From the sequence record JN849462.1: DNA of 64,000 nucleotides. One strand, 5' to 3'. Under the pieces are notes generated by a model that had not been told where the DNA came from, did no database searches, and worked only from the letters and a program-made list of their open reading frames with translations. Shown here piece after piece: positions 3,197 through 57,495 of this stretch (position 1 is its first letter; each line of letters opens with the position of its first letter). The position numbers were made by a program, and so were the translations under genes.

Positions 3197-3380
3197 ATTA
3201 TACGACGAAAGTGCTATCTTCTAAACATGCACCAGCCATACTAGTTTCTCTAATATTTCTAATATCCCTAACTTCACTAAAACTACTAATACTACTAAGA
3301 TGATGCCCAATTTTTGGGCCTCAAATCCAAACCTGCCGCTTCGCTCTAGATTTAGATACAAAAAAGCCCCGAAAGGGGCT
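3197..3380 (-). repeat. Conserved intergenic element, copy A: terminator + GC hairpin + six CTAA at 9-bp period + promoter
   Basis: CTAA at 3250, 3259, 3268, 3277, 3286, 3295; terminator hairpin 3365-3380; TTTAGA-N17-TATAAT at 3197-3225. Homologous to copies at about 29.3 kb and 57.4 kb. Confidence 0.8.
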
Positions 3381-3392
3381 TATTGCTTTTTA

Positions 3393-3926
3393 CTAACCCA
3401 TATAGGGTGTGATGACTTCTTCTTTGCCATCGACTTTATGGATCATTTCAAAGTACGAGTATTCAAACTCAACATCACACGTTACAGTTTCAACATCACC
3501 TGCTTCAGTGTAGTTCCATTCAATAGCACTTAGAGACTTTGGAAACGCATTGACAAAGCGATACGTTGCAACAATCTTGTCTTTGTTATTGTCTAAAACA
3601 TGAAGCAACATAGTAACTGGAACAATCCCGTCACTTGTACTAGCACCAGTTGGGTTATTCATGGTGATTAACCACTTGTATAACTCAGCATAAGTACGCA
3701 TTTCTTCATCGACTAGAAACTGAATCGACAGGTCATCGTAAGATGTACCAGAACCTGCTACATGGTTGTTCGCTAGTTTGGCATATTTGGGACCTCGTGT
3801 AATACTTGCAATTTCCATATTAACACCCGGGATAGTGGCAGTTTGAATCTGCCACTGAAACGTTTGTGTTGCGTTGTTATCTGGGATGTCGATTCGGAAA
3901 TTATTCTTCATCGTCAAGTTTTTCAT
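3393..3926 (-). CDS. 3: gp3 tail tube terminator / tail completion protein
   Basis: TIPGV, YDDLSIQFLVDEEM and LHVLDNNK match T4 gp3; 177 aa. Confidence 0.85.
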   Translation of the reverse strand: MKNLTMKNNFRIDIPDNNATQTFQWQIQTATIPGVNMEIASITRGPKYAKLANNHVAGSGTSYDDLSIQFLVDEEMRTYAELYKWLITMNNPTGASTSDGIVPVTMLLHVLDNNKDKIVATYRFVNAFPKSLSAIEWNYTEAGDVETVTCDVEFEYSYFEMIHKVDGKEEVITPYMG

Positions 3927-5896
3927 TAGTTCACGTTACCTCTTGTAGACGGAATCTTAGCTTCACCGCTCGTAGTCAATGGGCGAGTGAAGTTGGTTGT
4001 ATTTTGCACTGAACTTACAGCGTTGTTGACGAAGTTCGTCCCAACTTCTTTTGTTTGTTGTGCTGCTCTGTATGCTGCTTCACGCGCTGCGACAGCTTCT
4101 AAGATCACTGAACGTTTAATCTCTTGGAATGGCTTAATCAACCCTTCTTCAATCATACGTTGTCTCTCAGCAGCAACGATAGCGTCTTCTTGCATTTGTT
4201 TCTTCTCAACTTCAGCCGCTAGGAACTTGTCTAGCGATTCAGTTGAACTTGCTAATGACTCGACTGGTCGTTTGATTGCATCGGCAGCGTTCTTAGCACC
4301 GTCTATAACCGCTTGTGCTGTATTCTTAGCACCGTCTACGATCATATCCCCTGCTTTCCCTAGATAGTCAGTTTGATAGCGTGCATTGAGTCTGTCCTTG
4401 ACTTCAGCCTTGCTTGCGTCAATACGCGCTCGGTTGCCTTCGATGTCTGCGCCAGCAATGAACTTCTCCATGCCTTCTGACTTCAGAAAATCAGGTAGTG
4501 CATTTAATGCATTCACGACGAACTCTTTAACGTTTAACATTAGGTCATCTATTGCTAACATAAGAAGTCTGAATGAGTCGGGGATTGATAGCCAACTTGC
4601 AATGATCTTATTAACCGCATTGACATACATTTGAAACGCACTTCTAACGAAAGAAGTTACCTTCTCGAAGCCAGATACGATTCCCTCAACTGCGCCTTCT
4701 GGTACAGCGTCTTTGATGTTTTCGCCGACGATTCCGAACCATTCACCAATCCCTCGAACCATATCCGTGAACCAGTTCGAGATTATACTGAATAGCATTG
4801 CTCGTTTTTCGGGGTCGCTAAAAATGTTCTTCAGCGCGCCGAAGATTCTGTCTAGCTCTTCTTCGAAGATTTTGTAAATACCATAACCTGCAACCATTGC
4901 AACTAGAGCCGCTGGGTTTAGCATTATCGCAACCATTCTACCTAGACCTAAGAATAATTGACGAACAACAGTCCACATCCATCCTTTTATGGTGCCGCTC
5001 ATATCAGTAGCAAGAGCTTGAACTATATTACCTGTTCCTTTACTAAACTTACCGAACCCTAGAAGAATGTTAGATGCGATTTTACCGAGCGTTCCGAATT
5101 TTGTTGCAGTCGAAGCAGCCATTGCCATTGATGTACTGAATGTCACCAATTGACCGCCTAACATCACTAACCCAACGCCGACAAGTCTGAATAATTTAGC
5201 AATCCATCCTAGTTTTTCACCAGCAAGGTGATTCGCGATACGTCGCAGATCACTAGCTTGATTGCGCTGAACTTTCATATTCTCTTTGTAGCGTAGTTGT
5301 TCAGTCTTACGATTGCGAGTTTCGGTAACGACTTGATACGCGAAAATTTTCTTGTACAATGCGCTTATAAAGCCCACAGTCAACGGGGCGTTGTTACCCG
5401 CACCGTTCTGTAGAAAACTGTTTAAATCGTCGGCAGCCGTCTTCTGAAGCCCTATAACGCGCTTCATGTCGTTGACTCTAAAGATCAGACGTTCAAACCA
5501 ACGATTAAAGCCCTCCTGCATACGTGCGAACTGCATTTTTGCAGTTAAGCGCATTTCTTGAATGCCACGATCAATACGAGACAAATGTCCTTTAAAGTCA
5601 AGAGTAGTCTTGATAATATCCGTTAGTGATATAATCGAAGCACGAACTTTATTGGAAGTTTGCTCAAAGTTTTCGATAACGCGCTGAAACAGATTCTTTT
5701 GCTGCGCCACCGCCTTTTCGTTTGTTTTAAACACCGACTGCATAGTTTCGAGCATAGACGTGGTCGTAATATCAATGTTGTTGATATGACGAGCGACGCG
5801 CTGCATCGTATAAACTTCAGGTCGGTCTTCTTGTTGGAGAATGATATGATCTAATCTTCCGATTATCTCATTCATTTTCTTGTCGTCAGCCGCCAT
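3926..5896 (-). CDS. 29: gp29-like tape measure / baseplate hub protein
   Basis: 656 aa, largely helical and Ala/Gly-rich with hydrophobic stretches; follows the gp26/gp51 chaperone genes. Confidence 0.6.
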   Translation of the reverse strand: MAADDKKMNEIIGRLDHIILQQEDRPEVYTMQRVARHINNIDITTTSMLETMQSVFKTNEKAVAQQKNLFQRVIENFEQTSNKVRASIISLTDIIKTTLDFKGHLSRIDRGIQEMRLTAKMQFARMQEGFNRWFERLIFRVNDMKRVIGLQKTAADDLNSFLQNGAGNNAPLTVGFISALYKKIFAYQVVTETRNRKTEQLRYKENMKVQRNQASDLRRIANHLAGEKLGWIAKLFRLVGVGLVMLGGQLVTFSTSMAMAASTATKFGTLGKIASNILLGFGKFSKGTGNIVQALATDMSGTIKGWMWTVVRQLFLGLGRMVAIMLNPAALVAMVAGYGIYKIFEEELDRIFGALKNIFSDPEKRAMLFSIISNWFTDMVRGIGEWFGIVGENIKDAVPEGAVEGIVSGFEKVTSFVRSAFQMYVNAVNKIIASWLSIPDSFRLLMLAIDDLMLNVKEFVVNALNALPDFLKSEGMEKFIAGADIEGNRARIDASKAEVKDRLNARYQTDYLGKAGDMIVDGAKNTAQAVIDGAKNAADAIKRPVESLASSTESLDKFLAAEVEKKQMQEDAIVAAERQRMIEEGLIKPFQEIKRSVILEAVAAREAAYRAAQQTKEVGTNFVNNAVSSVQNTTNFTRPLTTSGEAKIPSTRGNVN

Positions 5897-6063
5897 TATT
5901 GTTGTTCCTTATTCTTTTCTTGAATGTAATGTATAAGCTGTGCGGCATAGATTTCACGCTCGAATAGAACCATCGTTTCTAAGTCGTGAAGAGAAAAATT
6001 GCCATGAGTGATCATGGCAAAGTTTTCCTTGTAATACTCTTCGAGTGAGTATCTACCGAGCAT
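5896..6063 (-). CDS. 51: Small gp51-like ORF (55 aa, MLGRYSLEEYYKENFAMITHG...)
   Basis: Manually translated; TAATG overlaps at both ends; resembles the C-terminal part of T4 gp51. Not in the ORF track. Confidence 0.7.
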   Translation of the reverse strand: MLGRYSLEEYYKENFAMITHGNFSLHDLETMVLFEREIYAAQLIHYIQEKNKEQQ

Positions 6064-6911
6064 TATACGAAAAAATCTTCGATGCCTCTTAGCGTAACTT
6101 TCTCGTGATTACCACACTTAGGACATTTAACGTCAACGTATGTCGTAATTCGTGGAACTGAATCGACGAATGTCTGAACTTTTTTGAATGCTGCCGTATC
6201 AAGTTCGCCCATGATGTTCACAAGCTGACCTTGCTCTTCAAGTTCTTCTTTGGTGTAAACAGTATCACCAACATGAACTTCTTTAATTGATTCAACCGCA
6301 ATATTGAACAGACCTTGTGGTGTATTCGGGTCGTTGTTCTCATACACTCGAATTGTCGGGTGTTGGAGTTTGATAACAACTTTTGGGTTGACTCGAACTG
6401 TATCTTCACCTGTAAATTCAGGCACGAATGCAGCTTTCAAGTCGATATTGGTTCTGATACGTTCACCGCATAAGTGCTTCTCAGGTGCAAACACTGCTTC
6501 AATCGCTTCTTCGTTTGATTGATTCATAATCTCGGCAAAAATATCATCAGCCGATTTAGCCAGTTCAGCCTCTTCTTCTTCAGAAAGCTTTTGAAGTTCT
6601 TCTTCTGACTTCGGAGCACAGCAGTTGTATTCTGCTTGAATGTTAGTCACACCGTTACTGTTCATATACATATGCAGAAACAGATACTCAGAGTCACCAA
6701 CCGTTAGGTCATCCATTTTGATGTCAGATACAATGCAGTTTTCAAGACACTGTTCGATTGCGTCAATCTTCTCATCAGATTCATTTGCGATAAGCAATGC
6801 TTTATGCTCTTTTGCAAGCATTGCACGCAGTTTAATTTCTTCACCAGTTGATGGTAGTTTTACAGTATATTGTGGCGCAGCAAGTACGCTAATATCAAAT
6901 GCTTTAGTCAT
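6063..6911 (-). CDS. 26: gp26 baseplate hub assembly chaperone
   Basis: VKLPSTGEEIKLRAM, GDSEYLFLHM and the CPKC...LRGIEDFF C-terminus match gp26. Confidence 0.8.
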   Translation of the reverse strand: MTKAFDISVLAAPQYTVKLPSTGEEIKLRAMLAKEHKALLIANESDEKIDAIEQCLENCIVSDIKMDDLTVGDSEYLFLHMYMNSNGVTNIQAEYNCCAPKSEEELQKLSEEEEAELAKSADDIFAEIMNQSNEEAIEAVFAPEKHLCGERIRTNIDLKAAFVPEFTGEDTVRVNPKVVIKLQHPTIRVYENNDPNTPQGLFNIAVESIKEVHVGDTVYTKEELEEQGQLVNIMGELDTAAFKKVQTFVDSVPRITTYVDVKCPKCGNHEKVTLRGIEDFFV

Positions 6912-6922
6912 GATGTTTTACC

Positions 6923-7669
6923 TTAGAATAGACCTGAAATGGCTTCAGCGCCTGTATTGAAAAAGCTGTTATATGTTTTCTCGAAGTTTTGAGTAATACC
7001 CAGTTTATCCGAGATTGTGCTTGATAGATCTTCAGTCATGTATGTTGCGCTTTCGTAAACAAACTCGACTTCGAATTCAGCCACTGCGTTGTTATTCTCG
7101 TATCCTAACTGAACCCCACCTACTCGAATCGGATACGCATTCTTCAAGCTAGTCATCGTAACCATTTCTGCGTTACGATTGTATGTGTAAATCTCAATTG
7201 TTCGAGCATAGTTCGAGAAGAAACCGACTTGAGCAGAATCATTTGAATAAATCTGCTTAAACCAACCAAGTAACATTTTACGTTCTGGGTGTGTTGGTGA
7301 CAGATACAATGACATGGTCACTGTTTCGTCGGTTTTCGCTTTTACTACGTGATGTGGCTTACGTCTAGTTTTATCTACGTCAGTTTCGTATGACGACCCT
7401 GGGATGTTAACAGATTTCACCATCATTCCGATGTTTCGTTCGAACTCAAATCCTGAGCCGAAAAGAGAAGCAGTTGACGCAAGGGCATCTTGTACCCCTA
7501 CGCCTTTGATGTCTGAAAAGTCAGCATTCAAAAATGCCTCACCTGTATTCATCAACTGCTTTGCTGTATCTTGTAGCGATGCAAATCGCACCGCATACAA
7601 GTTTTGTCTGGCTAAGTCGTTCTTTGTAATTTGAGATAAGAACTTCTTAACATCTATTCCGATTGCCAT
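6923..7669 (-). CDS. 54: gp54 baseplate tail-tube initiator
   Basis: DLARQNLYAVRF, VKSVNIPG and FEVEFVY tube-fold motifs. Confidence 0.75.
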   Translation of the reverse strand: MAIGIDVKKFLSQITKNDLARQNLYAVRFASLQDTAKQLMNTGEAFLNADFSDIKGVGVQDALASTASLFGSGFEFERNIGMMVKSVNIPGSSYETDVDKTRRKPHHVVKAKTDETVTMSLYLSPTHPERKMLLGWFKQIYSNDSAQVGFFSNYARTIEIYTYNRNAEMVTMTSLKNAYPIRVGGVQLGYENNNAVAEFEVEFVYESATYMTEDLSSTISDKLGITQNFEKTYNSFFNTGAEAISGLF

Positions 7670-7672
7670 TCG

Positions 7673-8268
7673 TTATCTCCTTCTATAACGATCATCGTAA
7701 GCACGAACAGCAGAAATGTTGCGACCATTTTTAGCAACGAATTGTTGCAATGGCATGTGAATAACGTTGTACCAGTCATGTGGCTTGACTTCTTCAAGCG
7801 ACCCTTTAATTCGCTTGAGAATGTATAATTTCACCATATGTTTACTGAACTTGATGTTTTTCACTCGACCCCAATCGATCATTAATCGTGTGGAGTTGCT
7901 CACTGTTTTCGTGTTAGCATATCTAAGTAATGTGGTTAAAAATTTCTCGCGATCTTTGGGTGGGATGTAATGCAAGTTCAAGCCTAGCATATAGCCTTTT
8001 TGTTGCCCCAAGCAGATGATGCACGGAAATTTATCCCAGTATGGTAACTGGTGTTTAGTTTTTGCGTCGTACGCGAAAACATACATGTTGCCTTTGTGAG
8101 GAACTTGCACTTTTCGACTACGAATTGCATCATGAACGCGCTTTTTGAACCACGCCAGTGATTTGCGCTGATTCTTTGCAATTGGAGTACGACCAAGCTC
8201 GTGTGTTTGAGCCTTGAAGCTATCAAGAAGACTTTCTTTTTCTTCTTTGCTCTTTCTGGTCTAGCCAT
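7673..8268 (-). CDS. 2: gp2 DNA end protector, apparently split by a 1-nt frameshift near 8246
   Basis: MYVFAYDAK, YWDKFP and GLNLHYIPP are gp2 motifs. The gp2 frame is open from 8260, but the coupled ATG at 8268 is in another frame. Confidence 0.8.
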
Positions 8269-8723
8269 TACACTCTCAGTCCTATTAGTTTACGAAGTCC
8301 GACTTCAGTCAAGACTTTGAATTGCCATCCTTTCTGCTTTGCGAATTTAATCGCAGCAGCCCACTTATCTTGGTTTACTTGATACGTATATATCTCTTTC
8401 AGTAAACGCTTCTTAGCCTTTTCAGTAAGTCTCTGTGGTTTCTCGGGTGGCAATGTTTCTTTGTTGGGTTTGATCTCGAATATGAATTCTCGACCGTCAC
8501 TGAACTTCACGTAAAAGTCCATGAAATATCTACGTTTTTTCCCACCGTCAGCAGAACTAACATAAGGGATAACGATTTCTTCAGAGTTCCAGCGAACTAC
8601 ATGCGGGTTGTTGTCACACCAGCGCATGAAAGACAATTCCCATGAGCTTCTGTACTCAATTTTCTGATAGTTGCCTTTGTATTTCGATTTGTTTGTTGGA
8701 ACGTATTTGCCAGAATATGCCAT
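8268..8723 (-). CDS. 4: gp4 head completion nuclease
   Basis: MAYSGKY, YRSSWE, RRYFMDF and IFEIKP (TnsA-like) motifs match T4 gp4. Confidence 0.92.
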   Translation of the reverse strand: MAYSGKYVPTNKSKYKGNYQKIEYRSSWELSFMRWCDNNPHVVRWNSEEIVIPYVSSADGGKKRRYFMDFYVKFSDGREFIFEIKPNKETLPPEKPQRLTEKAKKRLLKEIYTYQVNQDKWAAAIKFAKQKGWQFKVLTEVGLRKLIGLRV

Positions 8724-8741
8724 AAAACGCCTCCTTTCATT

Positions 8742-8763
8742 TATTTAGTATCGAGTCTAAATA
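8742..8763. promoter_or_regulatory. Divergent late-type promoters (ACTAAATA minus, TCTAAATA plus)
   Basis: TAAATA cores on both strands between genes 4 and 48; variants of the T4 gp55 TATAAATA box. Confidence 0.55.
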
Positions 8764-8789
8764 CAGATATATTTTAAAGGAGATCTAAC

Positions 8790-9929: not shown

Positions 9930-10507
9930 TGATTTTCGCGATATTTGACAAGACTGAATATCTTGGTGTTGAGACTGCGAATATTTTCAAGAATTTGAAT
10001 TATTATCATAAGCAGATCATCCCATCATTCACGACTATTCAGTACAAAATCAGGGGCGACTATCGCCCTGAACAGATTGCATATGAACTGTATGGCGATA
10101 CGTCGTTATACTGGTTGATTATGCTTCTAAACGAACGAGTTGACCCTTTTTATGATTGGGTTCAGCCCAACGAATCGGTTTCTGAGAACGCTATTTATCG
10201 TTATCAGTTTATTGGCGGCAACGAGCAAGTTCATCATCACGTAGATGAGCAAGGTCGATGGTGGTATGACGTGGTCGAAGACCCAGAAAATCCTCGAAAT
10301 TGGTACAATAAATTCGATTGGGAAAACAACGCGCCTGAAGAAGGGCAGGAAGATTATCGTGAGCTTCTATATCACGGCGTGATGATCCCTGTTTCCGTTG
10401 ACGAATATGAATTCAACCGAAACGAAGAAAATCGCGTAATCAATGTACTATCGAGGGATGATGTTAGTACATACATTAGCACATTCATGAAATTAGCAGG
10501 GGTATAA
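9929..10507 (+). CDS. 53: gp53 baseplate wedge protein
   Basis: RPEQIAYELYG..LYWLIMLLN...DPFYDW LysM-like motif. Confidence 0.88.
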   Translation: MIFAIFDKTEYLGVETANIFKNLNYYHKQIIPSFTTIQYKIRGDYRPEQIAYELYGDTSLYWLIMLLNERVDPFYDWVQPNESVSENAIYRYQFIGGNEQVHHHVDEQGRWWYDVVEDPENPRNWYNKFDWENNAPEEGQEDYRELLYHGVMIPVSVDEYEFNRNEENRVINVLSRDDVSTYISTFMKLAGV

Positions 10508-27773: not shown

Positions 27774-29191
27774 GTAAAGGAACTCAAATTTTCAATCACG
27801 TGATTGATGATGCGGGTACGGTTACAGTTGAAGTCGCTGGTACTGCCTTTGACGGGCAGACTGGCGGCAACGATGATCTTCAGACGTGTCTTGAATTGAT
27901 TCAAGATCACGCTGTTCAGCCGTTACCTGATTACCCAGTCGCGTCAACGACTGTGGCTGGTATTACGAAATTAAGTGATGAAGCCGCTGTAATTGATCCG
28001 CTAAACACAGATAGCGCGGTTACGCCAAGTTCGCTTGATTATTGGATGCAAAATCACGCAACCGCAACTGAATTGCAGTATGGTTTCGTAAAGCTGATAA
28101 CCGAAAGCACAATCGACACAGTAGCACCGTCAGACCCTGTAGAAGCTGCACAAAAGCACGCATTCACGTTAAAAACGCTGAACTACGCTCTTAACACTCG
28201 ATTTTACGCGACTGAATCTGATCCAGGTGCTGTGCGTCTCGCGACGAATGCGCAAGCAACGACAACAGGCACACTTTCAACTACTGTAGCAATGACGCCG
28301 CAGCGAGTTAAAGAAATGCTTGACGTATGGGCAAACACAACTGCATCAGATGCATCCGAAACTACAAAGGGGTTGATTCGTCTAGCAAACGGGACTGAAG
28401 TCAACAGTACATTAGCGACTGAAGATAACTTGGCAATTTCGCCATATCGTTTTAACTTTAGAACAGCAACCACGACTCGTAAGGCAGGGTTTTATCTACC
28501 CGACGCTACAGTTGCCAACGCTCGTGCGTCGAACGAACATGCAGTTACAGTGGGCACATTGAATCTATTCAGTGCAAATAGTTCTCGTGTGGGTGTTGCT
28601 AAAATAGCAAACAATCTGACGACGAATGATCCGTTACAAGCTCTAAGTGCAGCAATGGGTTATAAGTTGAACAACGAGAAGATTGGCGATGCGGGTGGTA
28701 CAGTCACGGGTACGCTGAAGATCAACAATGTTCAGTCAGTCGGCGGAACTCAGTTGATGACTAATGGTCTAATTGAATCACGGGCAATGCTTAATATGTA
28801 TCCAGTCGGTTCAGTTTACATGTCGTTAGTATCAACATCACCTGCTACGCTTTTCGGCGGTACATGGGCTAGATTAGCACAAGGTCGTGTTCTTGTTTCA
28901 GAGGGTTCATATGGCGGGAGAACTTTTGCAGTTCGCCAAACTGGCGGCGAGTATGAAGTTCAGCTAACTGAAGCAACAATACCAGCTCATAAACACGCTG
29001 GTTGGGGTGAACATTACGACGGTAACGGTATCGGGTTTGGCGTTGCGAAGCAATACGGGCGTAATAACCCAGGTTCTCGTAGAACAGACAGTGACAACTA
29101 TCTATACTACACATCGCCGGTCGGCGGTAACCAAGCACACAACAACGTACAGCCATACTATACTGTTTACATGTGGGAAAGAACTGCATAA
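27770..29191 (+). CDS. 12: Short tail fibre gp12, paralogue 2
   Basis: ASETTKGLIRLA repeats, YPVGSVYMS...FGGTW and HKH motifs. Confidence 0.75.
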   Translation: MSKGTQIFNHVIDDAGTVTVEVAGTAFDGQTGGNDDLQTCLELIQDHAVQPLPDYPVASTTVAGITKLSDEAAVIDPLNTDSAVTPSSLDYWMQNHATATELQYGFVKLITESTIDTVAPSDPVEAAQKHAFTLKTLNYALNTRFYATESDPGAVRLATNAQATTTGTLSTTVAMTPQRVKEMLDVWANTTASDASETTKGLIRLANGTEVNSTLATEDNLAISPYRFNFRTATTTRKAGFYLPDATVANARASNEHAVTVGTLNLFSANSSRVGVAKIANNLTTNDPLQALSAAMGYKLNNEKIGDAGGTVTGTLKINNVQSVGGTQLMTNGLIESRAMLNMYPVGSVYMSLVSTSPATLFGGTWARLAQGRVLVSEGSYGGRTFAVRQTGGEYEVQLTEATIPAHKHAGWGEHYDGNGIGFGVAKQYGRNNPGSRRTDSDNYLYYTSPVGGNQAHNNVQPYYTVYMWERTA

Positions 29192-29231
29192 AGACAAGCA
29201 TAGTATAACGCATATGTCAATGTGAATAAAC

Positions 29232-29401
29232 GGGTGAGATTGATTTCTCACCCTTTTTTGTATGAGCGAAGCGGTAGAAACGGATCGAGGCGGAAAAATT
29301 CCGTCTCATCTTAGTAGTATTAGTGGTTTTAGTGAAGTTAGAGATATTAGTATGATTAGTATTAAATACTTGTTTAAATCCATGAATGTACCTGCTATTA
29401 T
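29232..29401 (+). repeat. Conserved intergenic element, copy B (inverted relative to A and C)
   Basis: Terminator 29232-29259, AGCGAAGCGG, hairpin with AAAATT loop, TTAG at 29311, 29320, 29329, 29338, 29347, 29356, then TTTAAA-N17-TATTAT (29373-29401). Confidence 0.8.
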
Positions 29402-29442
29402 AAACGCATAAAGACATCTCCCTCCTTGATCCTTTGTATTGC

Positions 29443-29450
29443 TATAAATA
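29443..29450 (+). promoter_or_regulatory. Late promoter TATAAATA
   Basis: Exact late box upstream of wac. Confidence 0.8.
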
Positions 29451-29489
29451 GTAGTAAGCTATGTTCATTTACAATACAAGGGAACAAAA

Positions 29490-31169
29490 ATGACAATTCA
29501 AAAGCCTATCATTACAGAGCTTAGATATGTAAATGGTCAACCAGATCCTTCTCAACGTCCCGATCAAACTCGAATTAACTGGGCTAAGAATGGTGAAAGC
29601 ATCAATGGTGCTTCTGGTGACACAGTTTCTGACGGTGTGTTAAACCGAGCAGGAGTACAGATCCAAGAAAACGTTCTGAACACACATTATAATACAAAAG
29701 CACAGCAAACGACAATCGAGGAACTTGTCGATACCGTAAACGAACTGACGGGTGGTGGCGACGCAAACCTTGGTGCTCGTGTTTCTCAGACTGAATTCGA
29801 TATTGATGTTCTTGAAAATCAAGTAGATGATCTTCAAGACAATGTTGGTGTACCGTCTACTATTGATGTTATGGCAACCGGTTTATATCGTCGCGCTGAA
29901 GACATCGAAGCTGATATTGGTGTTCGTAACCCAAATGACATCCCAAATGACGTTGAGAATAATGACACGATTCGTAAAGACTTGTATTTCATCAAACGTC
30001 GTATTGGTAACGACCGTAACTATGATGTAAACGGGAATTCTTCTCCAAGTACAAACCCAACTGGTATGAAATATCAGATTGAAGATTTGTATAACAAAAC
30101 TGCAACGATCAATGCTGAAATTGGTGAAAACGCAATCCCGTTGACTATCAATGGTCGTCTGTATGAGTTGGAGCAGAACTCACAGGTCGGTGATGTTGCT
30201 GAAATTCGTAGCGAAATCGGTGATTCTCAAGATGCAGACCCTGCTCGTACGATTTATTTGCGCCTTGACGACGCAGAAAGTGCGATTAGTGACAACTCAT
30301 CAGACATCAATTTGTTGCAACAAGAAATCGAGACTCCAACAACTGGTCTAATTGATCGTGTTTCGGCTAATGAAACTGCAATTTCAGACGGTCAGACGCA
30401 AATCACTGCTAATGCTCAGTCGATTACTGATATTACAACTGATCTCGGATCGTACTCAGTAGGTGACGTGTATGCAGGTACCGTTAAAGCTCGTCTATCG
30501 ACGTTTAACGACGACATTTCTAATCTATGGAGCCGTTTAGGGGCTACTGACGCAGAGACCGGCACAGTGTCTTATAGAGTGGCAGGATTAGAGGCTAGTC
30601 TCGGGGATCGCGATAGCCCGGTTGAATTCACAGCTTGGTACACTATTCAAGAAAACCGTGGTCTGATTGATTCTGCTCAGTCTGAGGTTGACGGTCTTTT
30701 GACTGTGGTTGGTCAGAGTGATACGGAAGTGGGTACTTTGCGTGCTCGTGTTCTTGAGCTTGAAGCCAATTTGGATTATGCAATGTTGACTTCAGACACG
30801 CCAAACACAGCATCATTGACAACAACACCGACAGACATGTTCAGTTTATTCAACGTTGAATCGGACGTAAGTGGTTTTACATACACTGGTGGCGTTTTGA
30901 CCAGAACTGGTCTTGATATTAAGAAGCCGATCATGTTGAACTGGGTAGTTGTTTCTCCGACTACAACAACACTTACAATCAAGATTGATATTGTCAATCC
31001 GAGTGGTAGTGTTACTATCGAAAAAACACGTACGCTTCGTGCGGGATTGGTTACACCGATCAATATTGTTCACGTTGCTGACATTGAAGACACTGGTGAT
31101 ATTACTATTCTTGCTAGTACTGCGGCAAACGTTACGATTGAACACGAATCGTTCTTCATGCAACTATAA
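29490..31169 (+). CDS. wac: Fibritin (Wac), lacking the T4 foldon
   Basis: RINWAKNGE and GVLNRAGVQIQEN N-terminus; long segmented coiled coil. Confidence 0.88.
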   Translation: MTIQKPIITELRYVNGQPDPSQRPDQTRINWAKNGESINGASGDTVSDGVLNRAGVQIQENVLNTHYNTKAQQTTIEELVDTVNELTGGGDANLGARVSQTEFDIDVLENQVDDLQDNVGVPSTIDVMATGLYRRAEDIEADIGVRNPNDIPNDVENNDTIRKDLYFIKRRIGNDRNYDVNGNSSPSTNPTGMKYQIEDLYNKTATINAEIGENAIPLTINGRLYELEQNSQVGDVAEIRSEIGDSQDADPARTIYLRLDDAESAISDNSSDINLLQQEIETPTTGLIDRVSANETAISDGQTQITANAQSITDITTDLGSYSVGDVYAGTVKARLSTFNDDISNLWSRLGATDAETGTVSYRVAGLEASLGDRDSPVEFTAWYTIQENRGLIDSAQSEVDGLLTVVGQSDTEVGTLRARVLELEANLDYAMLTSDTPNTASLTTTPTDMFSLFNVESDVSGFTYTGGVLTRTGLDIKKPIMLNWVVVSPTTTTLTIKIDIVNPSGSVTIEKTRTLRAGLVTPINIVHVADIEDTGDITILASTAANVTIEHESFFMQL

Positions 31170-51550: not shown

Positions 51551-51552
51551 TA

Positions 51553-52146
51553 TTACCTCGTTGCTGCGTTTGTGATATTTCTGATCATACGCACTGCGAA
51601 TTGAGTGTCGCCTGTCATGGCTGCTGACGCCGCCTTATCAACGTAAAACGTGCTATCTTCGATCATGTTCAAGTGATGATAGATTTCACGAAAATCGTGA
51701 CGGTCGAACTCTTTAGTCGTGAATCGAAGTGCACCTGCTTTCTTGTCATCATCGTGAACACGTTTGTATTCATCAATGACTCGAATCATTTCACTAGCGT
51801 ATTTCTTCATTTCCATGTTATCGAGCTTCAAACGTTTTGCTGCTTGAATTACCTCGTCACGAGGACGCTCAAGTTCAATCGCATCTTTAAGAATGTTCAG
51901 ACTGTGAATGGTATTCACTGCTGCCTTTTCCATTTGTAATTTGTGATCTTCAAGCGTTCGATTGTGCTTTCTCAATTCACCGGTTGCGGTAGCACTTGCA
52001 ATCAAGCCAGCAAAAACGCCCCAGAACCCGCCTTTACGCTGCAAGCGTTTCTTAACTTCGCCTTTCGAACCTGCTGTAATTGCTTGAAATTGCGCCCATT
52101 TTCCGCTTTTTCTTGCTTTATCCATTTCTGTTAAAAATTCAATCAT
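51553..52146 (-). CDS. Hypothetical helical protein, candidate internal head protein
   Basis: MIEFLTEM N-terminus; TCTAAATA late-type box at 52172-52179. Confidence 0.7.
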   Translation of the reverse strand: MIEFLTEMDKARKSGKWAQFQAITAGSKGEVKKRLQRKGGFWGVFAGLIASATATGELRKHNRTLEDHKLQMEKAAVNTIHSLNILKDAIELERPRDEVIQAAKRLKLDNMEMKKYASEMIRVIDEYKRVHDDDKKAGALRFTTKEFDRHDFREIYHHLNMIEDSTFYVDKAASAAMTGDTQFAVRMIRNITNAATR

Positions 52147-52187
52147 AGTTTTAACCCCTTATTGTTTACTGTATTTAGACGTAAACG

Positions 52188-52211
52188 AAAAAAGGGCGAC
52201 CGAAGTCACCC
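52188..52211 (-). terminator. Rho-independent terminator
   Basis: GGGTGAC-TTCG-GTCGCCC-TTTTTT. Confidence 0.8.
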
Positions 52212-52228
52212 TTTAACAGTTGGTTAAA

Positions 52229-52855
52229 TTAACCGTAGATTGCTTTGATGTTATCAAAGAATGCGCTTGATTTGTTCACTTTCGCAATGACATACCGAGC
52301 GTTAGTGCAAACTAGCGACTTAACATTGATGTTCTCTAGTTCAGATTTCGTTAGATTTGCGTTTTGCACAAGTGTTAGGATCTCACGAGCGTCGTCGCGT
52401 AGTGCAATAGATGCCAAATAACGAACCTGCTGCTTTGTTTCGAGATTCTTGAAGGCATCAATCGCATTCTGACCTGCGATAGCTACTGAAGCGCCTAGAC
52501 CACGATTCAGTGCGCGAGTCAAAAGCTTCTCAAGACCAACAATCGGGTTTCGCGGTGTTCCACGCTGTGGAATATCAACTGAAAGCTTACCACTGTTCTT
52601 CAGTGAGTATACGTGAACTTCTTTCGATCCGAACTTCTCAAAACGACATACGATAATCTCGTCTGATTTTTGAACGTTGTCTTGAACTCGACGGCGAAGT
52701 TGTTCGTTATATTCACCGCCATTCAGCGCATACACGATTTCAGCAACTGTTAGATCGCGTTTCGAAAGGAGTTCGATGATCGCAGGGCGAAAATTAGTAC
52801 GGCTAACAGTTTCGTTGTTTGCTAGTGCTTTGCGTACGATTTCAATATTTTTCAT
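52229..52855 (-). CDS. Hypothetical protein, possible N-terminal winged helix
   Basis: GAGAA RBS; IIELLSKRDLTVAEIVYAL helix pattern. Confidence 0.7.
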   Translation of the reverse strand: MKNIEIVRKALANNETVSRTNFRPAIIELLSKRDLTVAEIVYALNGGEYNEQLRRRVQDNVQKSDEIIVCRFEKFGSKEVHVYSLKNSGKLSVDIPQRGTPRNPIVGLEKLLTRALNRGLGASVAIAGQNAIDAFKNLETKQQVRYLASIALRDDAREILTLVQNANLTKSELENINVKSLVCTNARYVIAKVNKSSAFFDNIKAIYG

Positions 52856-52871
52856 GATATAATTCTCTCAA

Positions 52872-53147
52872 TTAAATTTGTTTTTCGACGGGAACTTGTG
52901 TTTCGTTGAAATACTTACCTGTATATTCAGTGTAAGCTTCGTGAAAGCTGTCAAGCTCATCATCTACAATAATCTGTTCGCCGGTTTCGAATGTATACAT
53001 GATACAATCATATAAACCCGTGGCAGCATTGTACATTGGTTCAGTTGTGAATCTCACACCGCACGGCGTGAAAAGCTCAATTCTGACTTCAGGGACTGGT
53101 ACTTGCTCTGCATTGTGTACTGCAAATGCTTGTTCTAATCTAGTCAT
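52872..53147 (-). CDS. Hypothetical early protein (91 aa)
   Basis: ATG at 53147 with an AGAGAG RBS; TTGACA-N17-TAAACT promoter at 53180-53208. Confidence 0.65.
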   Translation of the reverse strand: MTRLEQAFAVHNAEQVPVPEVRIELFTPCGVRFTTEPMYNAATGLYDCIMYTFETGEQIIVDDELDSFHEAYTEYTGKYFNETQVPVEKQI

Positions 53148-53208
53148 AATGTGCTCTCTGTATTGTCTCAACGAAAACAAGTTTAGGTCAAGACAATACT
53201 AATGTCAA

Positions 53209-53697
53209 TTACTTTTTGCGCCATTTTGCAAGTTTTTCATCGTATTCACTGTGCTTCCACAAATCAAACACGATAGTACCGCTCTGAAACCACCACACAA
53301 GTGAGATTGTATCATTCAGCTTAGGATCTTTAGGGTTCTTTCCTAAGTAAAGCTCAGTACTCGGGTGCGAGTGGTAGATTGCTTTTTTGACAGCGAACTT
53401 ATATCCGCCTTCTGGCATACCAATTTCTTTCGGTGGGTAGATATTACCCAGATACGCTACTTGGTATACTGTGTTTTTGAACACAACACGAGCCGAGTCA
53501 ATATTGAAAAGCAAGTTTTGATACTTAGCAGCATTCGGGGCAATCTTCCATTTATTCTTAGGCTTGGTTTCGAGTAGTTTATCAATCTCTGGTTCTGGTA
53601 TCAATTTACCGAGATTGTGATTTCCCCATTCTTCCTCAAGAGAAAGACTAATATGAATGCCGTAAAGCGTGTTTTCATATTCGTTAAATCGAAGCAT
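53209..53697 (-). CDS. Hypothetical protein
   Basis: GAGG RBS; MLRFNEYE N-terminus. Confidence 0.7.
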   Translation of the reverse strand: MLRFNEYENTLYGIHISLSLEEEWGNHNLGKLIPEPEIDKLLETKPKNKWKIAPNAAKYQNLLFNIDSARVVFKNTVYQVAYLGNIYPPKEIGMPEGGYKFAVKKAIYHSHPSTELYLGKNPKDPKLNDTISLVWWFQSGTIVFDLWKHSEYDEKLAKWRKK

Positions 53698-53701
53698 GTT
53701 G

Positions 53702-54208
53702 TTACCTCAGATAAGTGAAGCTATTTGAATTGCGTTCATGAACTAACAATTCACCGCGAAGCTTAACCCAATGTTCAATTGTCTTTAGATCGTGCGAGTC
53801 TCGACGACCGATGTGCCAATCATGAATGATTTCAGCCGATAACGGTTGATATAATTCATCACCGCGACGATATGTAGGCATCCATTTAGGTTTGAATTCA
53901 TCTTCGACCTTAATCGCATCAACTGGATCGACTAGAACTACGTCAACACGTTCTAAATGCTCGTGAGATTCAACGTCAACGAATTCAGTGTCTTTGGCAT
54001 CTGATTCATCGACTAAATCACAACGAGCCTCAGAATCAATTACAGCGCATTCTAGCGGCACTTCAGTTTGAGATACGATTTCATGAGCGATAAGCTCTTC
54101 GATCATTTTGCTCTTGGTAAGTGATTTGTCAAGTTCGATGTCATAATGTTTCAACGCGAATTCAGCGACACCTCGCTTAGTCTGTTTCTTTAGATATTCA
54201 GTAATCAT
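53702..54208 (-). CDS. inh: Inh (inhibitor of prohead protease gp21) homologue
   Basis: HYDIELDKSLTKSKMIEEL and RGELLVHERNSNSF motifs; divergent from uvsW as in T4; AAGGA RBS before 54208. Confidence 0.6.
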   Translation of the reverse strand: MITEYLKKQTKRGVAEFALKHYDIELDKSLTKSKMIEELIAHEIVSQTEVPLECAVIDSEARCDLVDESDAKDTEFVDVESHEHLERVDVVLVDPVDAIKVEDEFKPKWMPTYRRGDELYQPLSAEIIHDWHIGRRDSHDLKTIEHWVKLRGELLVHERNSNSFTYLR

Positions 54209-54216
54209 ATTATTCC

Positions 54217-54423
54217 TTAGCAATTAATAGTGACCCATTCGTTTTGGTTCAAGTCAAAGAATGTCAGAGTATCGACACAACGTTCATTCTTCCTCATTTC
54301 TTCGCGATTCGTTTCAAGAACAGGCAAATAATGCTTGCACAATGTGGCGTGATATTGGCACCCGTCGCGTTCTAATTTAAGACATCCTTGCGTCATACAG
54401 GACATCATTTCTTCTCGTGTCAT
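54217..54423 (-). CDS. Small hypothetical protein
   Basis: GAGG RBS; 68 aa. Confidence 0.55.
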   Translation of the reverse strand: MTREEMMSCMTQGCLKLERDGCQYHATLCKHYLPVLETNREEMRKNERCVDTLTFFDLNQNEWVTINC

Positions 54424-54436
54424 GATTTTAGACCTC

Positions 54437-54444
54437 TATAAATA
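54437..54444 (+). promoter_or_regulatory. Late promoter TATAAATA
   Basis: Exact late box upstream of uvsW. Confidence 0.8.
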
Positions 54445-54486
54445 CAGTTATACATATTTAGACAAAACTCGCATAGAGAGAAAAAC

Positions 54487-56010
54487 ATGACAGATATTAA
54501 AATTGAGTACTTCGATGAGAGTTATGCGAGAGTCGTAGCCGAGCCAAGCATTACTCATGAAATGATTGATTACTTTTCATTTCTAACTGACGGGTACAAA
54601 TTCAACCCTAAATTTAAAATGGGCATATGGGATGGCAAGATTCGACTAATGACGTATCAAGGTCTATTACCATACGGTCTAGTCGGTCAAGCTAAAGCGT
54701 TTGCATCAAACATGATGTACACGATTGAAACTGATCCACTACTTGATCCGATTGAGAAAATTTCTCGTGAAGATTTTGAAGCATGGGTTGCTTCTCTTGA
54801 TATTTACGGTGGCAGCAATAAAATTAGCCCGTACTGGTATCAAATGGATTCAGTATTTCACGGTATTAACAATCAGCACAGCCTTTTGAATCTACCAACA
54901 TCTGCGGGTAAGTCGCTGATTCAGTCACTTTTGACACGTTGGTTTTTAGAAAATCACGAAGCTCAGAAAGTGTTGATTATCGTCCCAACGACTGCACTAG
55001 TTCAGCAAATGCGTGACGACTTTTTAGACTATCGCTTGTTTGAACATGGTGACATATATCAAATTCGAGGTGGCGTAGATAGAGACGCAATCGGAGATTG
55101 TCGTATTGTTGTTTCAACATGGCAATCGGCTGTTAAGCAAGATAAAGCATGGTTCGATCAGTTCGGTATGCTTCTAGTCGATGAATGTCACTTAGCAACG
55201 GGTAAGTCGCTTGACGGCATCATCAAAAAAATGACCAGTTGTGAATACAAAATCGGTCTTACTGGTTCACTTAGAGACGGTAAAGCTAATATTCTACAGT
55301 ACGTGGGTTCATTTGGTGATATTTTCAGACCTGTATCGACTGCACAGCTAATGGAAGAAGGGCAAGTAACTGATCTGAAGATCAATTGCTTGATGCTTGA
55401 ATATCCTCAGCCACTACGTGATGAAATGAAAGGCAGTTCATATCAAGAAGAAATGAAATTCATTCTTGAGAACAAACAGCGAAATCGTTACCTGATTAAG
55501 CTTGCTCATCATCTGAGTGCTAAGAAAGGCGAGAACACGCTATTACTGTTCAAGAACATCAAACATGGTAAATTGCTTTACGAAGCATTGAAGAAAGTAT
55601 ACGACCCTGAGAAAGTGTTCTACGTATCAGGTGAAACTAAGACTGACGACCGTACGCATGTTAAGAAAATTGCAGAAGATATTGACGGGGCAGTTATTGT
55701 CGCATCATACGGTGTATTCTCGACTGGTATCAGTATCAAGAAACTACACAACGTAATTTTCGCACACCCGACAAAGAGTAAGATCATCAACTTACAGTCG
55801 ATTGGTCGTATTCTACGTAAGCACGGTTCGAAAGTTACTGCGAAGCTGTTTGACATTATCGACAACTTAGCGATCAAGCCGAAACGAGCTAACGCTAAGA
55901 AGCCGTATACGCATGTCAATTATACTATGAAGCATGGGATGCAGCGTATTGAGCTTTACAACCAAGAAGAGTTCAAGTACGCAGTCAAAAAAGTTGACCT
56001 TGCTGCATAA
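54487..56010 (+). CDS. uvsW: UvsW helicase
   Basis: LPTSAGKS, VDECH, GLTGS and QSIGRILR superfamily 2 motifs. Confidence 0.96.
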   Translation: MTDIKIEYFDESYARVVAEPSITHEMIDYFSFLTDGYKFNPKFKMGIWDGKIRLMTYQGLLPYGLVGQAKAFASNMMYTIETDPLLDPIEKISREDFEAWVASLDIYGGSNKISPYWYQMDSVFHGINNQHSLLNLPTSAGKSLIQSLLTRWFLENHEAQKVLIIVPTTALVQQMRDDFLDYRLFEHGDIYQIRGGVDRDAIGDCRIVVSTWQSAVKQDKAWFDQFGMLLVDECHLATGKSLDGIIKKMTSCEYKIGLTGSLRDGKANILQYVGSFGDIFRPVSTAQLMEEGQVTDLKINCLMLEYPQPLRDEMKGSSYQEEMKFILENKQRNRYLIKLAHHLSAKKGENTLLLFKNIKHGKLLYEALKKVYDPEKVFYVSGETKTDDRTHVKKIAEDIDGAVIVASYGVFSTGISIKKLHNVIFAHPTKSKIINLQSIGRILRKHGSKVTAKLFDIIDNLAIKPKRANAKKPYTHVNYTMKHGMQRIELYNQEEFKYAVKKVDLAA

Positions 56011-56022
56011 TAGATACGAAAA

Positions 56023-56046
56023 AGGGAGCAAATTGCTCCCTTTTTT
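56023..56046. terminator. Bidirectional terminator
   Basis: AAAAGGGAGCA-AAT-TGCTCCC-TTTTTTT. Confidence 0.8.
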
Positions 56047-56047
56047 A

Positions 56048-56158
56048 TTAGTCAGAAAAGATTGCCGAGAGAATCGCACCGATTAACTCGAACAGAAATT
56101 CAAATGGCGCCCAGAGCCAGTCGAAAAACCCACGATCTCGTTTACGATCTCTGCTCAT
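56048..56158 (-). CDS. Possible 36-aa peptide (MSRDRKRDRGFFDWLWAP...)
   Basis: AAGG RBS; fills the gap before the terminator. Confidence 0.35.
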   Translation of the reverse strand: MSRDRKRDRGFFDWLWAPFEFLFELIGAILSAIFSD

Positions 56159-56162
56159 ACCT

Positions 56163-56333
56163 TTACCCGTTTAGAAGTTGTGTTTCGACAAGTTGCTGAT
56201 CGCCGCCAGATTCAGAAATAGCCATTTCTGCTAGATGTTGCTGACATTGACCTGCGTGAACTGTGCCTTGTGGCGTATCAATCGTGACATCGCCTTCTTT
56301 GATAGGTTGCTTGCATACAACACAATGTGCCAT
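56163..56333 (-). CDS. uvsY.-2: UvsY.-2-like small protein
   Basis: CVVCKQPI...GTVHAGQC...ETQLL matches the T4 ORF. Confidence 0.8.
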   Translation of the reverse strand: MAHCVVCKQPIKEGDVTIDTPQGTVHAGQCQQHLAEMAISESGGDQQLVETQLLNG

Positions 56334-56506
56334 TAGTCTAACCCCGATTTTGTAAGTGATTGGTAGAGTGCGAAGTCGTTGACTTGCAATGAGCCATTCA
56401 ATTCCCACCCGTCGTTTAGTAGCTCTTGCACCTCTTCTTCGAATTCATCTGCGAACTCATGACGCCGAGATACTACTTTGTATTTATGTCTAAGCCAGTT
56501 CTGCAT
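56333..56506 (-). CDS. Small hypothetical protein (57 aa, MQNWLRHKYKVV...LLNDGWELNG)
   Basis: Manually translated; TAATG coupling with the next ORF. Not in the ORF track. Confidence 0.65.
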   Translation of the reverse strand: MQNWLRHKYKVVSRRHEFADEFEEEVQELLNDGWELNGSLQVNDFALYQSLTKSGLD

Positions 56507-56507
56507 A

Positions 56508-56921
56508 CTACATACCTATTGCTAGTTTGAATAGAGCAGACGCTTTACCACCATCGAAAACTTTACCTGTAGCCTTTAGAGCGCCCATTAGTTTGCCCAT
56601 ATCACGCATAGAATCTGCACCAGTTTCTAGCACGAAGTTAGAAACAAACGTGTCTAGCTCTGAATCGGATATTTTTGCTGGTAGCAAAGACTCAAGAACA
56701 GCGTTTTCAGCGTTCAGAATGTCAACATGGTCGCCCTGTGCGTGTTCAAGTGCGAGTTTGTTGTTGTCGATTGCGCTTGAGATCACTTTGATGCAAGATT
56801 CATCATCGTGTTTTTGACGACGGTCAAGTTCACCCATAATGACACCCAAGACAGACGCAACTGCGTTGTTGCGGTCTTTACGAGCTTGTAGGCGTGTTGC
56901 TTTGATTGTTTCGATGATCAT
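56508..56921 (-). CDS. GatB/YqeY-domain protein
   Basis: ARKDRN...LGVIMGEL and DMGKLMGALK...FDGGKAS motifs. Confidence 0.8.
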   Translation of the reverse strand: MIIETIKATRLQARKDRNNAVASVLGVIMGELDRRQKHDDESCIKVISSAIDNNKLALEHAQGDHVDILNAENAVLESLLPAKISDSELDTFVSNFVLETGADSMRDMGKLMGALKATGKVFDGGKASALFKLAIGM

Positions 56922-57331
56922 ACTATACCACTCTCAATTTTTCTATTATCAATAATGTGTTTAATTGTGAAGCCCATTTGGCTAATGCCTTTCAAAGCTT
57001 CTTCGATGAAAGATAACACATCTTTCATGTGTTGAAAACGTGCAATCGCTAATTGAAGAGCCTCATCACCAGCGAGTGCGTATTTCATTTCACTTTTTTC
57101 AACGATAAAATCACAAACTTCATCGTCATGCTTGCCGCTATAAAAGAGCCAGCGGTCTTTTCTCACTGCTTCCATTTTCATTTCAGCTTTAATAAGAAGC
57201 TGTCTTGCATCGGCTCTATATGCAAGCCACTTTGCATGAAGTACTGGGATTCGAATGGCTGCTGTTTCTAGTGCAGTCGTATCGATCTTAACGTCTTCAT
57301 GGTATTCTGCTTTTAAATCTTGTAACTTCAT
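56918..57331 (-). CDS. uvsY: UvsY recombination mediator
   Basis: MKLQDLK, DVKID and GFTIKHIIDNRKIESG motifs; 137 aa from ATG 57331 with a GAGG RBS. Confidence 0.92.
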   Translation of the reverse strand: MKLQDLKAEYHEDVKIDTTALETAAIRIPVLHAKWLAYRADARQLLIKAEMKMEAVRKDRWLFYSGKHDDEVCDFIVEKSEMKYALAGDEALQLAIARFQHMKDVLSFIEEALKGISQMGFTIKHIIDNRKIESGIV

Positions 57332-57351
57332 ATAATACCCTCGCTTCATCA

Positions 57352-57495
57352 AGTATACATATCAAACGGGTTTTTGTAAACACGAATCTCACTAATACTT
57401 CTAATATCACTAAAAGCACTAATTCTACTAAGATGATGCGGAATTTTTCCGCATCTTACCTTTTGCTTCGCGTATAAAAAAGCCCCGAAGGGCTT
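57352..57495 (-). repeat. Conserved intergenic element, copy C, upstream of uvsY
   Basis: Terminator 57476-57494, TGCGG-AATTTT-TCCGCA hairpin, CTAA at 57392, 57401, 57410, 57419, 57428, then TTTACA-N17-TATACT (57352-57380). Confidence 0.8.

Follow-up and report, generated by a model that had tools for sequence, protein, structure and literature searches.

A hairpin and phased TTAG array repeated at six places in the genome of Vibrio phage phi-pp2

What is the role of a sequence unit that recurs, nearly identical, in widely separated intergenic regions of a T4-type phage genome? The question is raised by the last 64 kb (64,000 nucleotides, termed the window here) of record JN849462.1 (246,421 bp) of Vibrio phage phi-pp2, a KVP40-like T4-type myovirus (Straboviridae, Schizotequatrovirus). 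Genome positions are obtained by adding 182,421 to window positions (window 28000-31000 = genome 210421-213421). An original prediction described in three intergenic regions of the window one ordered cassette, which runs from a terminator through a GC hairpin and a set of TTAG repeats to a promoter, and proposed that these are dispersed replication origins or activator-dependent promoters. The order was recovered as described, with every listed part present in the three regions. The cassette is a real, conserved element, the core of which consists of the hairpin and the array; the terminator and the sigma-70-like promoter are optional. The array is probably a docking site for a sequence-specific factor, and the cassette is read here, tentatively, as a genome-level site of protein binding and unwinding that resembles an origin.

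Anatomy and conservation of the core

The core was aligned over 26 copies from five phages. A block of ~80 bp, spanning -24 to +53 relative to the first TTAG, is conserved, and conservation drops abruptly at both edges. The block begins with the hairpin GA(G/T)GC(GG/CC)AA-AAA-TT(CC/GG)G(C/T)(A/C)TC, which is followed by ATC and then by the (TTAG-N5) array, composed of five to eight units at exactly 9 bp. TTAG and the register are kept over the alignment, in agreement with the predicted phased recognition array and in support of the wider idea of the original prediction, a dispersed array to which protein would bind. The spacer bases had been thought to vary freely within the fixed period; the 9-bp register is indeed kept, but units 1-3 are almost invariant position by position across phages (TTAGTAGWA TTAGTRNTT TTAGTG...), and thus the constraint extends beyond TTAG. 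Two array units read TTCG in K566. The top strand of the array is nearly devoid of C (17 in 1404 bases, 1.2%). In most copies a AGCGAAGCG box is located 15-30 nt upstream of the hairpin.

The hairpin consists of a 9-bp stem and an AAA loop, and not only of the GC stem with an AAAATT loop proposed originally, while the accompanying statement that pairing is kept holds by way of compensatory swaps. Of the stem cells in the alignment, 90.5% are paired, as compared with 84.9% in column shuffles, none of which (0/500) reaches 90.5%; slid registers give at most 55%. Two adjacent stem pairs flip jointly between GC and CG, giving CGG/CCG and CCC/GGG alleles, and the allele can vary at one site between phages. 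Independent swap events are few, and conversion has probably spread a single allele; nevertheless, a compensatory change of four bases speaks for selection on pairing and not on sequence. The commonest state at one stem position is a G.T pair, which is functional on the sense strand only. On folding of the single-stranded DNA, the terminator and the conserved hairpin form and the array stays open. Taken together, the strict TTAG, the register, the hairpin pairing and the sharp edges of the block indicate purifying selection.

Each array is also a local minimum of nearest-neighbour duplex stability, at the 99.8-99.98th percentile of 40-bp windows genome-wide, and with 50-bp windows five of the six arrays in the genome rank 6th-17th among its least stable loci. 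The DNA downstream of the cassette promoters is of ordinary stability. The low-stability segment is the array itself, with no separate A+T-rich unwinding element adjoining it.

Trivial origins of the pattern were considered. Over the whole window, (TTAG-N5)x5 with at most one mismatch matches at the three cassette sites only, and no match was obtained in dinucleotide shuffles of the window (0 matches, n = 100), which rules out chance or low complexity as the source of the arrays. A coding repeat was rejected: the TTA frame reads Leu-x-x peptides, but it has no start codon, and in-frame stops vary in position from -24 to -96. With the Rfam 15 covariance models at gathering score, the whole window gave two tRNA matches only, so the cassette matches no RNA family and a known one is ruled out.

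Number, placement and distribution of the copies

The description of the element as triplicated is correct for the window, the edge of which truncates the set. A scan of the whole phi-pp2 genome revealed six copies, three of them outside the window: upstream of nrdH (genome 35,907), between pp2_133 and pp2_134 (genome 80,602), and between pp2_246 and pp2_247 (genome 129,004). The gaps between the six are 44.7, 48.4, 56.7, 26.0, 28.1 and 42.5 kb. Every copy has the same orientation as both of its flanking genes (6/6; chance probability 1/64). A terminator stem-loop is situated directly upstream at four of the six sites, including all three in the window, and a sigma-70-like promoter by consensus (-35/N17/-10), followed by a Shine-Dalgarno (SD) sequence and start codon, is present at five. 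The copy between pp2_133 and pp2_134 has no terminator, and its promoter, TTGACA-17-TACTAT, is placed 82 bp from the first TTAG. The copy between pp2_246 and pp2_247 has neither terminator nor promoter; its last array units supply the SD sequence and abut the ATG of a lipoprotein-like open reading frame (ORF). At this lipoprotein-gene site the array abuts an SD sequence and a start codon, ATG or GTG, in every phage examined.

The proposed motif search in the genome and its relatives thus gave six copies in phi-pp2, and blastn with an 83-nt core retrieved Vibrio phages only, in 51 records, with nearly always six places in the complete genomes. About 50 Vibrio phage genomes from at least two genera carry the cassette. 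KVP40 and VH7D have six copies each in IMG/VR, and nt-1, which is placed in another genus (Mylasvirus), has the cassette at its uvsY site. The most divergent carrier, 1.081.O, with a UvsY 79% identical, uses the same six sites as phi-pp2. The sites are syntenic among phi-pp2, KVP40, VH7D, 1.081.O and, as seen at the uvsY site, nt-1; three of them adjoin core genes (gene 1, wac, uvsY), and the six show no association with indels. In bacteria (one genome each of 185,579 species), the combination of hairpin and array was not found, the single match being due to chance. When IMG/VR was scanned for the bare (TTAG-N5)x5 pattern and metagenomes for three units, the matches listed were unrelated tandem repeats only, mostly from giant viruses and AT-rich contigs.

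Copies of one genome share unit sequences and the upstream flank, which are distinct from those of other genomes, and therefore evolve in concert. At the gene-3/gene-1 site of 1.081.O two complete cassettes stand in tandem, 164 bp apart (L178:16469-16700, minus strand), which shows that the cassette duplicates locally. We also note that at two sites the upstream genes, otherwise unrelated, end in codons (..K-S-E-A..stop) supplied by the AGCGAAGCG box (VH7D L168, L157; phi-pp2 L005:29150-29200), which suggests that the left cassette end overwrote the 3' ends of genes through recombination.

Outside the carriers, the outgroup D479 (UvsY 49% identical) provides a view of a more distant state. Its uvsY promoter, GTTTAAC-N17-TATACT, is present without a TTAG x6 array. 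D479 has a repeat of its own at five places, three of which were located, including the uvsY site and two tandem copies at the nrdH site (L179:1360-1442; L181:49098-49318). The repeat comprises a putative hairpin, recognized by eye (9-bp stem and 3-nt loop at uvsY), and GCGCTAAAATCCTCCAG..TTATAGTAGTTATTGTATTAGGGG, of which TTATAGTAGTTATTGTATTAGGGG is a C-poor, TAG-rich tract. The D479 repeat resembles the TTAG cassette and may be its diverged counterpart. The hairpin with a TAG-rich tract, and the promoter without the array, would therefore mean that the architecture predates the strict array and that the promoter is independent of it.

The three window copies and their promoters

Copy A is located on the minus strand between gene 3 (tail completion) upstream and gene 1 (dNMP kinase) downstream, as annotated. 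The intrinsic terminator hairpin of gene 3 with its T-run (3364..3381), found by consensus scan and in the sequence, is followed by a GCGAAGC box (3338..3344, within AGCGAAGCGG) of a kind found in most copies of all phages. Pairing analysis and folding place the conserved hairpin GAGGCCCAA-AAA-TTGGGCATC, of the CCC/GGG allele, at 3302..3322. The array (3241..3298) has six TTAG units at an exact 9-bp period and a seventh unit, CTAG, and the consensus scan identifies the sigma-70-like promoter TTTAGA-17-TATAAT upstream of gene 1 at 3197..3225 (TTTAGA 3220-3225; TATAAT 3197-3202).

Copy B, on the plus strand, is annotated between the second gp12 short tail fibre gene (gp12-2) upstream and wac downstream. 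It consists of the intrinsic terminator after gp12-2 (29232..29253, consensus scan), the GCGAAGC box (29266..29272), the hairpin GAGGCGGAA-AAA-TTCCGTCTC of the CGG/CCG allele with one G.T pair (29287..29307), an array of six TTAG units at an exact 9-bp period (29311..29364), and the sigma-70-like promoter TTTAAA-17-TATTAT with TG before the second hexamer (29373..29401; TTTAAA 29373-29378, TATTAT 29396-29401). A T4-type late promoter box, TATAAATA, is situated ~40 bp upstream of wac at 29443..29450 on the plus strand and was assigned by the T4 late-promoter consensus; it belongs with wac and not with the cassette, and it is also present in 1.081.O. The wac copy of 1.081.O has no sigma-70-like promoter and only the late box. 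Thus, wac may have two promoter classes in phi-pp2 as compared with the late class alone in 1.081.O.

Copy C, on the minus strand, has gene 35 (fibre hinge) upstream and uvsY downstream by annotation. The terminator hairpin after gene 35 with its T-run (57480..57495) was recognized by eye, having been missed by the scan. The GCGAAGC box (57465..57471) and the hairpin GATGCGGAA-AAA-TTCCGCATC, a perfect 9-bp stem (57435..57455), precede an array of five TTAG units and a sixth unit TTCG at the 9-bp period (57383..57431). The promoter TTTACA-17-TATACT upstream of uvsY is found by consensus scan at 57352..57380 (TTTACA 57375-57380; TATACT 57352-57357), so annotation and scan both confirm that copy C lies at the uvsY promoter.

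The consensus scans accordingly recovered the terminators of copies A and B and all three promoter-like pairs, the count of promoter-pair matches being not above that in shuffles of these short AT-rich stretches. K566 and 1.081.O retain the hexamers of the gene 1 promoter around a diverged spacer, and those of the uvsY promoter are kept across diverged phages, even in D479. The gene 1 and uvsY promoters are probably real, since their hexamers are kept while the spacers change. The relation of array to promoter is loose. The first TTAG is separated from the -35 hexamer by 49, 51, 62, 73 and 82 bp in phi-pp2, and orthologous sites differ between 1.081.O and phi-pp2 (60 vs 51, 65 vs 82, 71 vs 73). 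GTTTA-N19-TAnnnT occurs 26 times in the phi-pp2 genome, and only 4 of these adjoin an array on the strand of the cassette. As GTTTA-type promoters are common elsewhere in the genome, a promoter class peculiar to the arrays was rejected. The array is kept at promoter-less sites and the distances drift, and it is therefore maintained with or without a promoter and with no fixed phasing.

Two further features were observed in passing. A second repeated promoter family with a conserved spacer, TTGAC(A/T)-NNGGTCAGCCCTTTCNNG-TATT(A/C)T, is present on the plus strand of the early region (phi-pp2 genome 21143, 60333, 86307, 98048, 121316) and probably corresponds to a PeSL class already published. Near the start of the window, at 255-375 and 386-498 on the minus strand, are tRNA genes belonging to a group 113-123 nt long, of which two more are annotated at 617-739 and 1007-1126; the full 71-position Rfam tRNA model is spread over 121 and 113 nt, which implies an intron-like insertion of ~45 nt. 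None of the four long tRNA genes (window 255-1126) is detected by ARAGORN with default settings.

Functional readings and comparison with known systems

An origin-like role is given a tentative preference because the array is independent of promoters and its spacing from them drifts, the core has sharp edges, the hairpin covaries, the strands are asymmetric, the array is readily melted, and the copies are fixed in number and evenly spread. The cassette would then act at the level of the genome rather than on a single gene. A sequence-specific factor, probably encoded by the phage, would dock cooperatively on the array, and the six copies would be duplex-opening sites, i.e., origin-like zones of replication initiation. 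At the upstream border of the opened array the hairpin would extrude on the sense strand, the downstream promoter would fire away from the array and feed negative supercoils into it, and the upstream terminator would bar incoming RNA polymerase. By analogy, the multiple dispersed origins of T4-type phages and the oriE repeats would serve as precedent, and the repeat of D479, with its hairpin and TAG-rich tract at the uvsY and nrdH sites, is consistent with such a role.

A number of observations weigh against an origin. The co-orientation of all six copies with genes is more simply explained by a transcription-linked role, and none of the six sites is at a strand-switch point. The arrays leave no inflection in GC or AT skew, both of which follow the orientation of the genes alone. 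A scan of 13 copies from phi-pp2 and 1.081.O for features of bacterial oriC (DnaA boxes, an IHF site, GATC clusters) revealed none that recurs consistently between -100 and +150 bp of the first TTAG. The dispersal of the sites, as predicted, does favour a genome-level role (six points placed at random on a circle are all 26 kb or more apart with P = 0.0065), but this test is post hoc and based on a single syntenic arrangement. No initiator or binder was found: a Pfam scan of the 59 small ORFs conserved between phi-pp2 and 1.081.O shows no RHH or HTH domain and returns only DsbA, gp33, gp45.2, WYL_2 and similar families, and no cognate initiator gene was found next to the cassettes, the flanking genes of which differ at all six sites. 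The anatomy is not of the T4 oriF type, and known T4 origins require no common motif. To our knowledge, six identical origins in one lytic phage are without precedent. The fuller proposal, in which six near-identical, evenly spaced origins (or chromosome-organising sites) would each combine the hairpin with a 9-bp-phased TTAG iteron array, itself the unwinding element, and be recognized by a co-evolving phage initiator, is regarded as unlikely.

The main alternative, possible but doubtful, is an upstream regulatory array, either a multi-site operator or an activating sequence, for the adjacent promoter, which would make the cassette an elaborated terminator-promoter unit of the PeSL type. It would be bound by a phage factor, possibly a MotA-like partner of AsiA, or by a modified RNA polymerase, and would set the timing or strength of the gene 1, uvsY, nrdH-24-55, wac and pp2_134 promoters. 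It is ranked second because of the co-orientation, the usual adjacent conserved promoter, the PeSL-like layout and the question of the AsiA partner. All six copies point the same way as their flanking genes, and five have a sigma-70-like promoter within 49-82 bp, with hexamers that are kept while the spacers change; the succession of stem-loop, AT-rich tract, -35, -10, SD and ATG fits the PeSLs of nt-1 and KVP40. T4 itself has MotA-dependent middle promoters at genes 1, uvsY, 55 and dam.

KVP40 and nt-1 possess AsiA without a recognizable MotA; KVP40 AsiA co-activates with T4 MotA, and a functional MotA analogue is suspected (Nolan 2006; Hinton 2010). A functional AsiA in KVP40 without a known MotA is in favour of a regulatory array, as is a conserved ORF directly upstream of asiA. 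This ORF, pp2_292 (243 aa; genome 160201-160932, L006:10501-11232), immediately precedes asiA (160936-161235). It has no Pfam match and belongs to a small PHROG without an assigned function, and its family is matched by only five clusters in a library of 1.84 billion proteins. A distant homologue of 218 aa on a metagenomic contig (L186:3001-3657) follows phoH, is likewise directly upstream of asiA and overlaps it. The AlphaFold model of pp2_292 with distant homologues in the alignment reaches a predicted local distance difference test (pLDDT) score of 79.9. Its identification as a MotA homologue was rejected, as no fold in the PDB matches, MotA included; by synteny only, it is a candidate MotA-like AsiA partner in KVP40-type phages. 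Just downstream of asiA, an ORF (genome 161244-161540, L006:11544-11840) has a match to the Pfam family of Tad2-like proteins (Thoeris anti-defence 2; E = 9e-26).

Several features do not fit a regulatory array. The lipoprotein-gene site keeps the array with no room for a promoter before the start codon, and the wac site of 1.081.O keeps it with a late promoter only. Orthologous array-promoter distances differ (82 vs 65, 51 vs 60), which excludes a fixed helical phasing. Most of the 26 GTTTA-N19-TAnnnT promoters do without an array, only 4 adjoining one on their own strand, and the uvsY promoter of D479 exists without it. The covarying hairpin and the even spacing are left unexplained. The proposal that the cassettes are activator-dependent promoters replacing the MotA system of T4 therefore stands in part: AsiA is indeed present without a recognizable MotA, but there are promoter-less arrays, the array-promoter distance is variable, and GTTTA-type promoters are mostly without arrays. 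Moreover, six sites are few beside the ~60 middle promoters of T4, including P1, PuvsY, P55 and Pdam (Nolan 2006; Hinton 2010).

The remaining alternatives are improbable. In the first, the element would act as RNA, the hairpin and UAG-N6 repeats being bound by an oligomeric protein, much as TRAP or HutP bind NAG repeats, with control of the translation or stability of the downstream gene as the result. Two sites have no upstream terminator and are hence transcribed, and at the lipoprotein-gene site the units give the SD sequence and lead directly into the start codon (ATG or GTG). The sense strand alone accommodates G.U in the hairpin, the array is almost free of C and has no predicted structure, and every copy is in sense orientation. 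Four of the six copies, however, are located between a strong intrinsic terminator and a promoter, i.e., in the least-transcribed gap, and therefore the main downstream mRNA would be without the element. The cassette has no Rfam match, and the even spacing of the six sites is not accounted for.

A genome-level site of another kind is no more probable: the array would wrap an oligomeric protein for pac-like initiation of packaging, as a centromere-like or condensation anchor, or as a strong topoisomerase site. Even dispersal, fixed copy number and synteny agree with this, as does the resemblance of phased short-repeat arrays to the binding sites of ring- or filament-forming proteins (pac sites, ParR/omega arrays), and PhageTerm called 'headful (pac)' for a KVP40-like phage, with no terminus position given. 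Against it, no cassette is found at the terminase genes, partition or tubulin-type genes are not annotated, and the strict co-orientation with transcription is left unexplained.

Similarly improbable is a recombinogenic or mobile PeSL-type sequence without a dedicated function, spread to six places and homogenised by gene conversion: PeSLs have been proposed to move and to mediate shuffling, copies within one genome are more alike than orthologous copies, the 1.081.O gene-1 site carries a tandem duplication, and the left edge replaces C-terminal codons of upstream genes at two sites, but occupancy is confined to the same six sites over two genera and ~20% protein divergence, without indel association, and the preserved TTAG, register, pairing and sharp edges indicate purifying selection.

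Depending on whether the origin-like reading or the regulatory one is correct, the cassette bears on one of two questions, namely the choice of origins in T4-type phages or the AsiA partner in phages without MotA. The former would give Straboviridae multi-copy origins of defined sequence, the latter a phased array of a novel type upstream of promoters, and each would be new for this family. With six copies, sharp edges, and TTAG boxes as mutational target and pull-down bait, it offers a compact, sequence-defined handle in these large marine Vibrio phages. Six fixed, recombination-prone homologies should also matter for the genome engineering of KVP40-like phages.

Among known elements, the PeSL/PmSL terminator-promoter cassettes have been described in nt-1 and KVP40 themselves (Comeau, Arbiol and Krisch 2014, PMC4122927; Arbiol 2010). 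The phased TTAG array and the second hairpin are not mentioned in the text of Comeau et al. 2014 (PMC4122927), nor are repeats or origins in the phi-pp2 paper, and no paper was found that pairs KVP40 with 'iteron', a comparison that covers sources other than the KVP40 genome paper (Miller 2003). Both PeSLs and the present cassette are repeated intergenic units in which a terminator stem-loop is combined with an AT-rich tract and a sigma-70-like promoter, and with an SD sequence and its start codon. A second hairpin, which covaries, and a TTAG array in strict phase set the cassette apart from PeSLs, and two of the cassette sites are without a terminator and one without a promoter. It is present in six copies at fixed syntenic sites, mostly by core genes, whereas PeSLs are many and situated at indel-rich hyperplastic regions; neither the hyperplastic location nor the indel association of PeSLs is found at the six sites.

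TRAP and HutP form ring oligomers on (U/G)AG triplets at fixed spacing, and their sites can overlap the ribosome-binding site. The cassette likewise has fixed-spaced (U/G)AG triplets, and its promoter-less copy overlaps a ribosome-binding site. The period, however, is 9 nt instead of 5-7 nt, four of six copies lie in putatively untranscribed gaps, and no TRAP or HutP homologue was noted.

Arrays bound by RHH proteins (the 8-bp metboxes of MetJ, the 7-bp heptads of omega, parC of ParR) take one dimer per unit, with the proteins spiralling along the DNA, and serve as operators and partition sites. They consist of 2-10 contiguous units of 7-11 bp, and the cassette array would be of the same kind. 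It differs in the adjoining hairpin and the extreme strand asymmetry, and no RHH protein is present among the 59 small conserved ORFs.

In iteron origins (R6K gamma, P1 oriR, lambda ori), phased direct repeats bind the initiator cooperatively beside an A+T-rich region; classical iterons are 17-22 bp long, recur about every two helical turns and have the Rep gene close by. The cassette has, as these do, at least three direct repeats in constant register. In contrast to classical iterons, its period is 9 bp, off the helical phase, the array doubles as the A+T-rich region, and no Rep-like gene adjoins it, the flanking genes being different at every site.

The closest setting is provided by T4, which has at least five dispersed origins with no common motif (Kreuzer and Brister 2010, PMC3016281). 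Two of them, oriF and oriG, are composed of a MotA-dependent promoter and a downstream A+T-rich unwinding element, and the transcript makes an R-loop; oriE contains evenly spaced 12-nt repeats, conserved in relatives, with an undefined role (PMC3016281). As at oriF (uvsY), copy C is located at the uvsY promoter with unusually meltable DNA beside it, in a group of phages with several dispersed origins. Nevertheless, the likeness to T4 ori(uvsY) drawn in the original prediction fails on anatomy: the meltable array is upstream of the promoter and the DNA downstream is ordinary, whereas T4 oriF needs its element downstream, and the T4 promoters have a MotA box at -30, in place of which -35/-10 promoters (TTTAGA, TTTAAA, TTTACA) are found here. 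Like oriE, the cassette contains a cluster of short direct repeats at even spacing in the genome of a T4-type phage; oriE has 12-nt repeats at one locus, as compared with 9-bp units at six loci, each with an adjoining conserved hairpin. The T4 origins share no motif, whereas the six cassettes are near-identical. If they do prove to be origins, a T4-type phage would possess a multi-origin system of defined sequence, in contrast to T4 itself, the origins of which are heterogeneous and without a motif.

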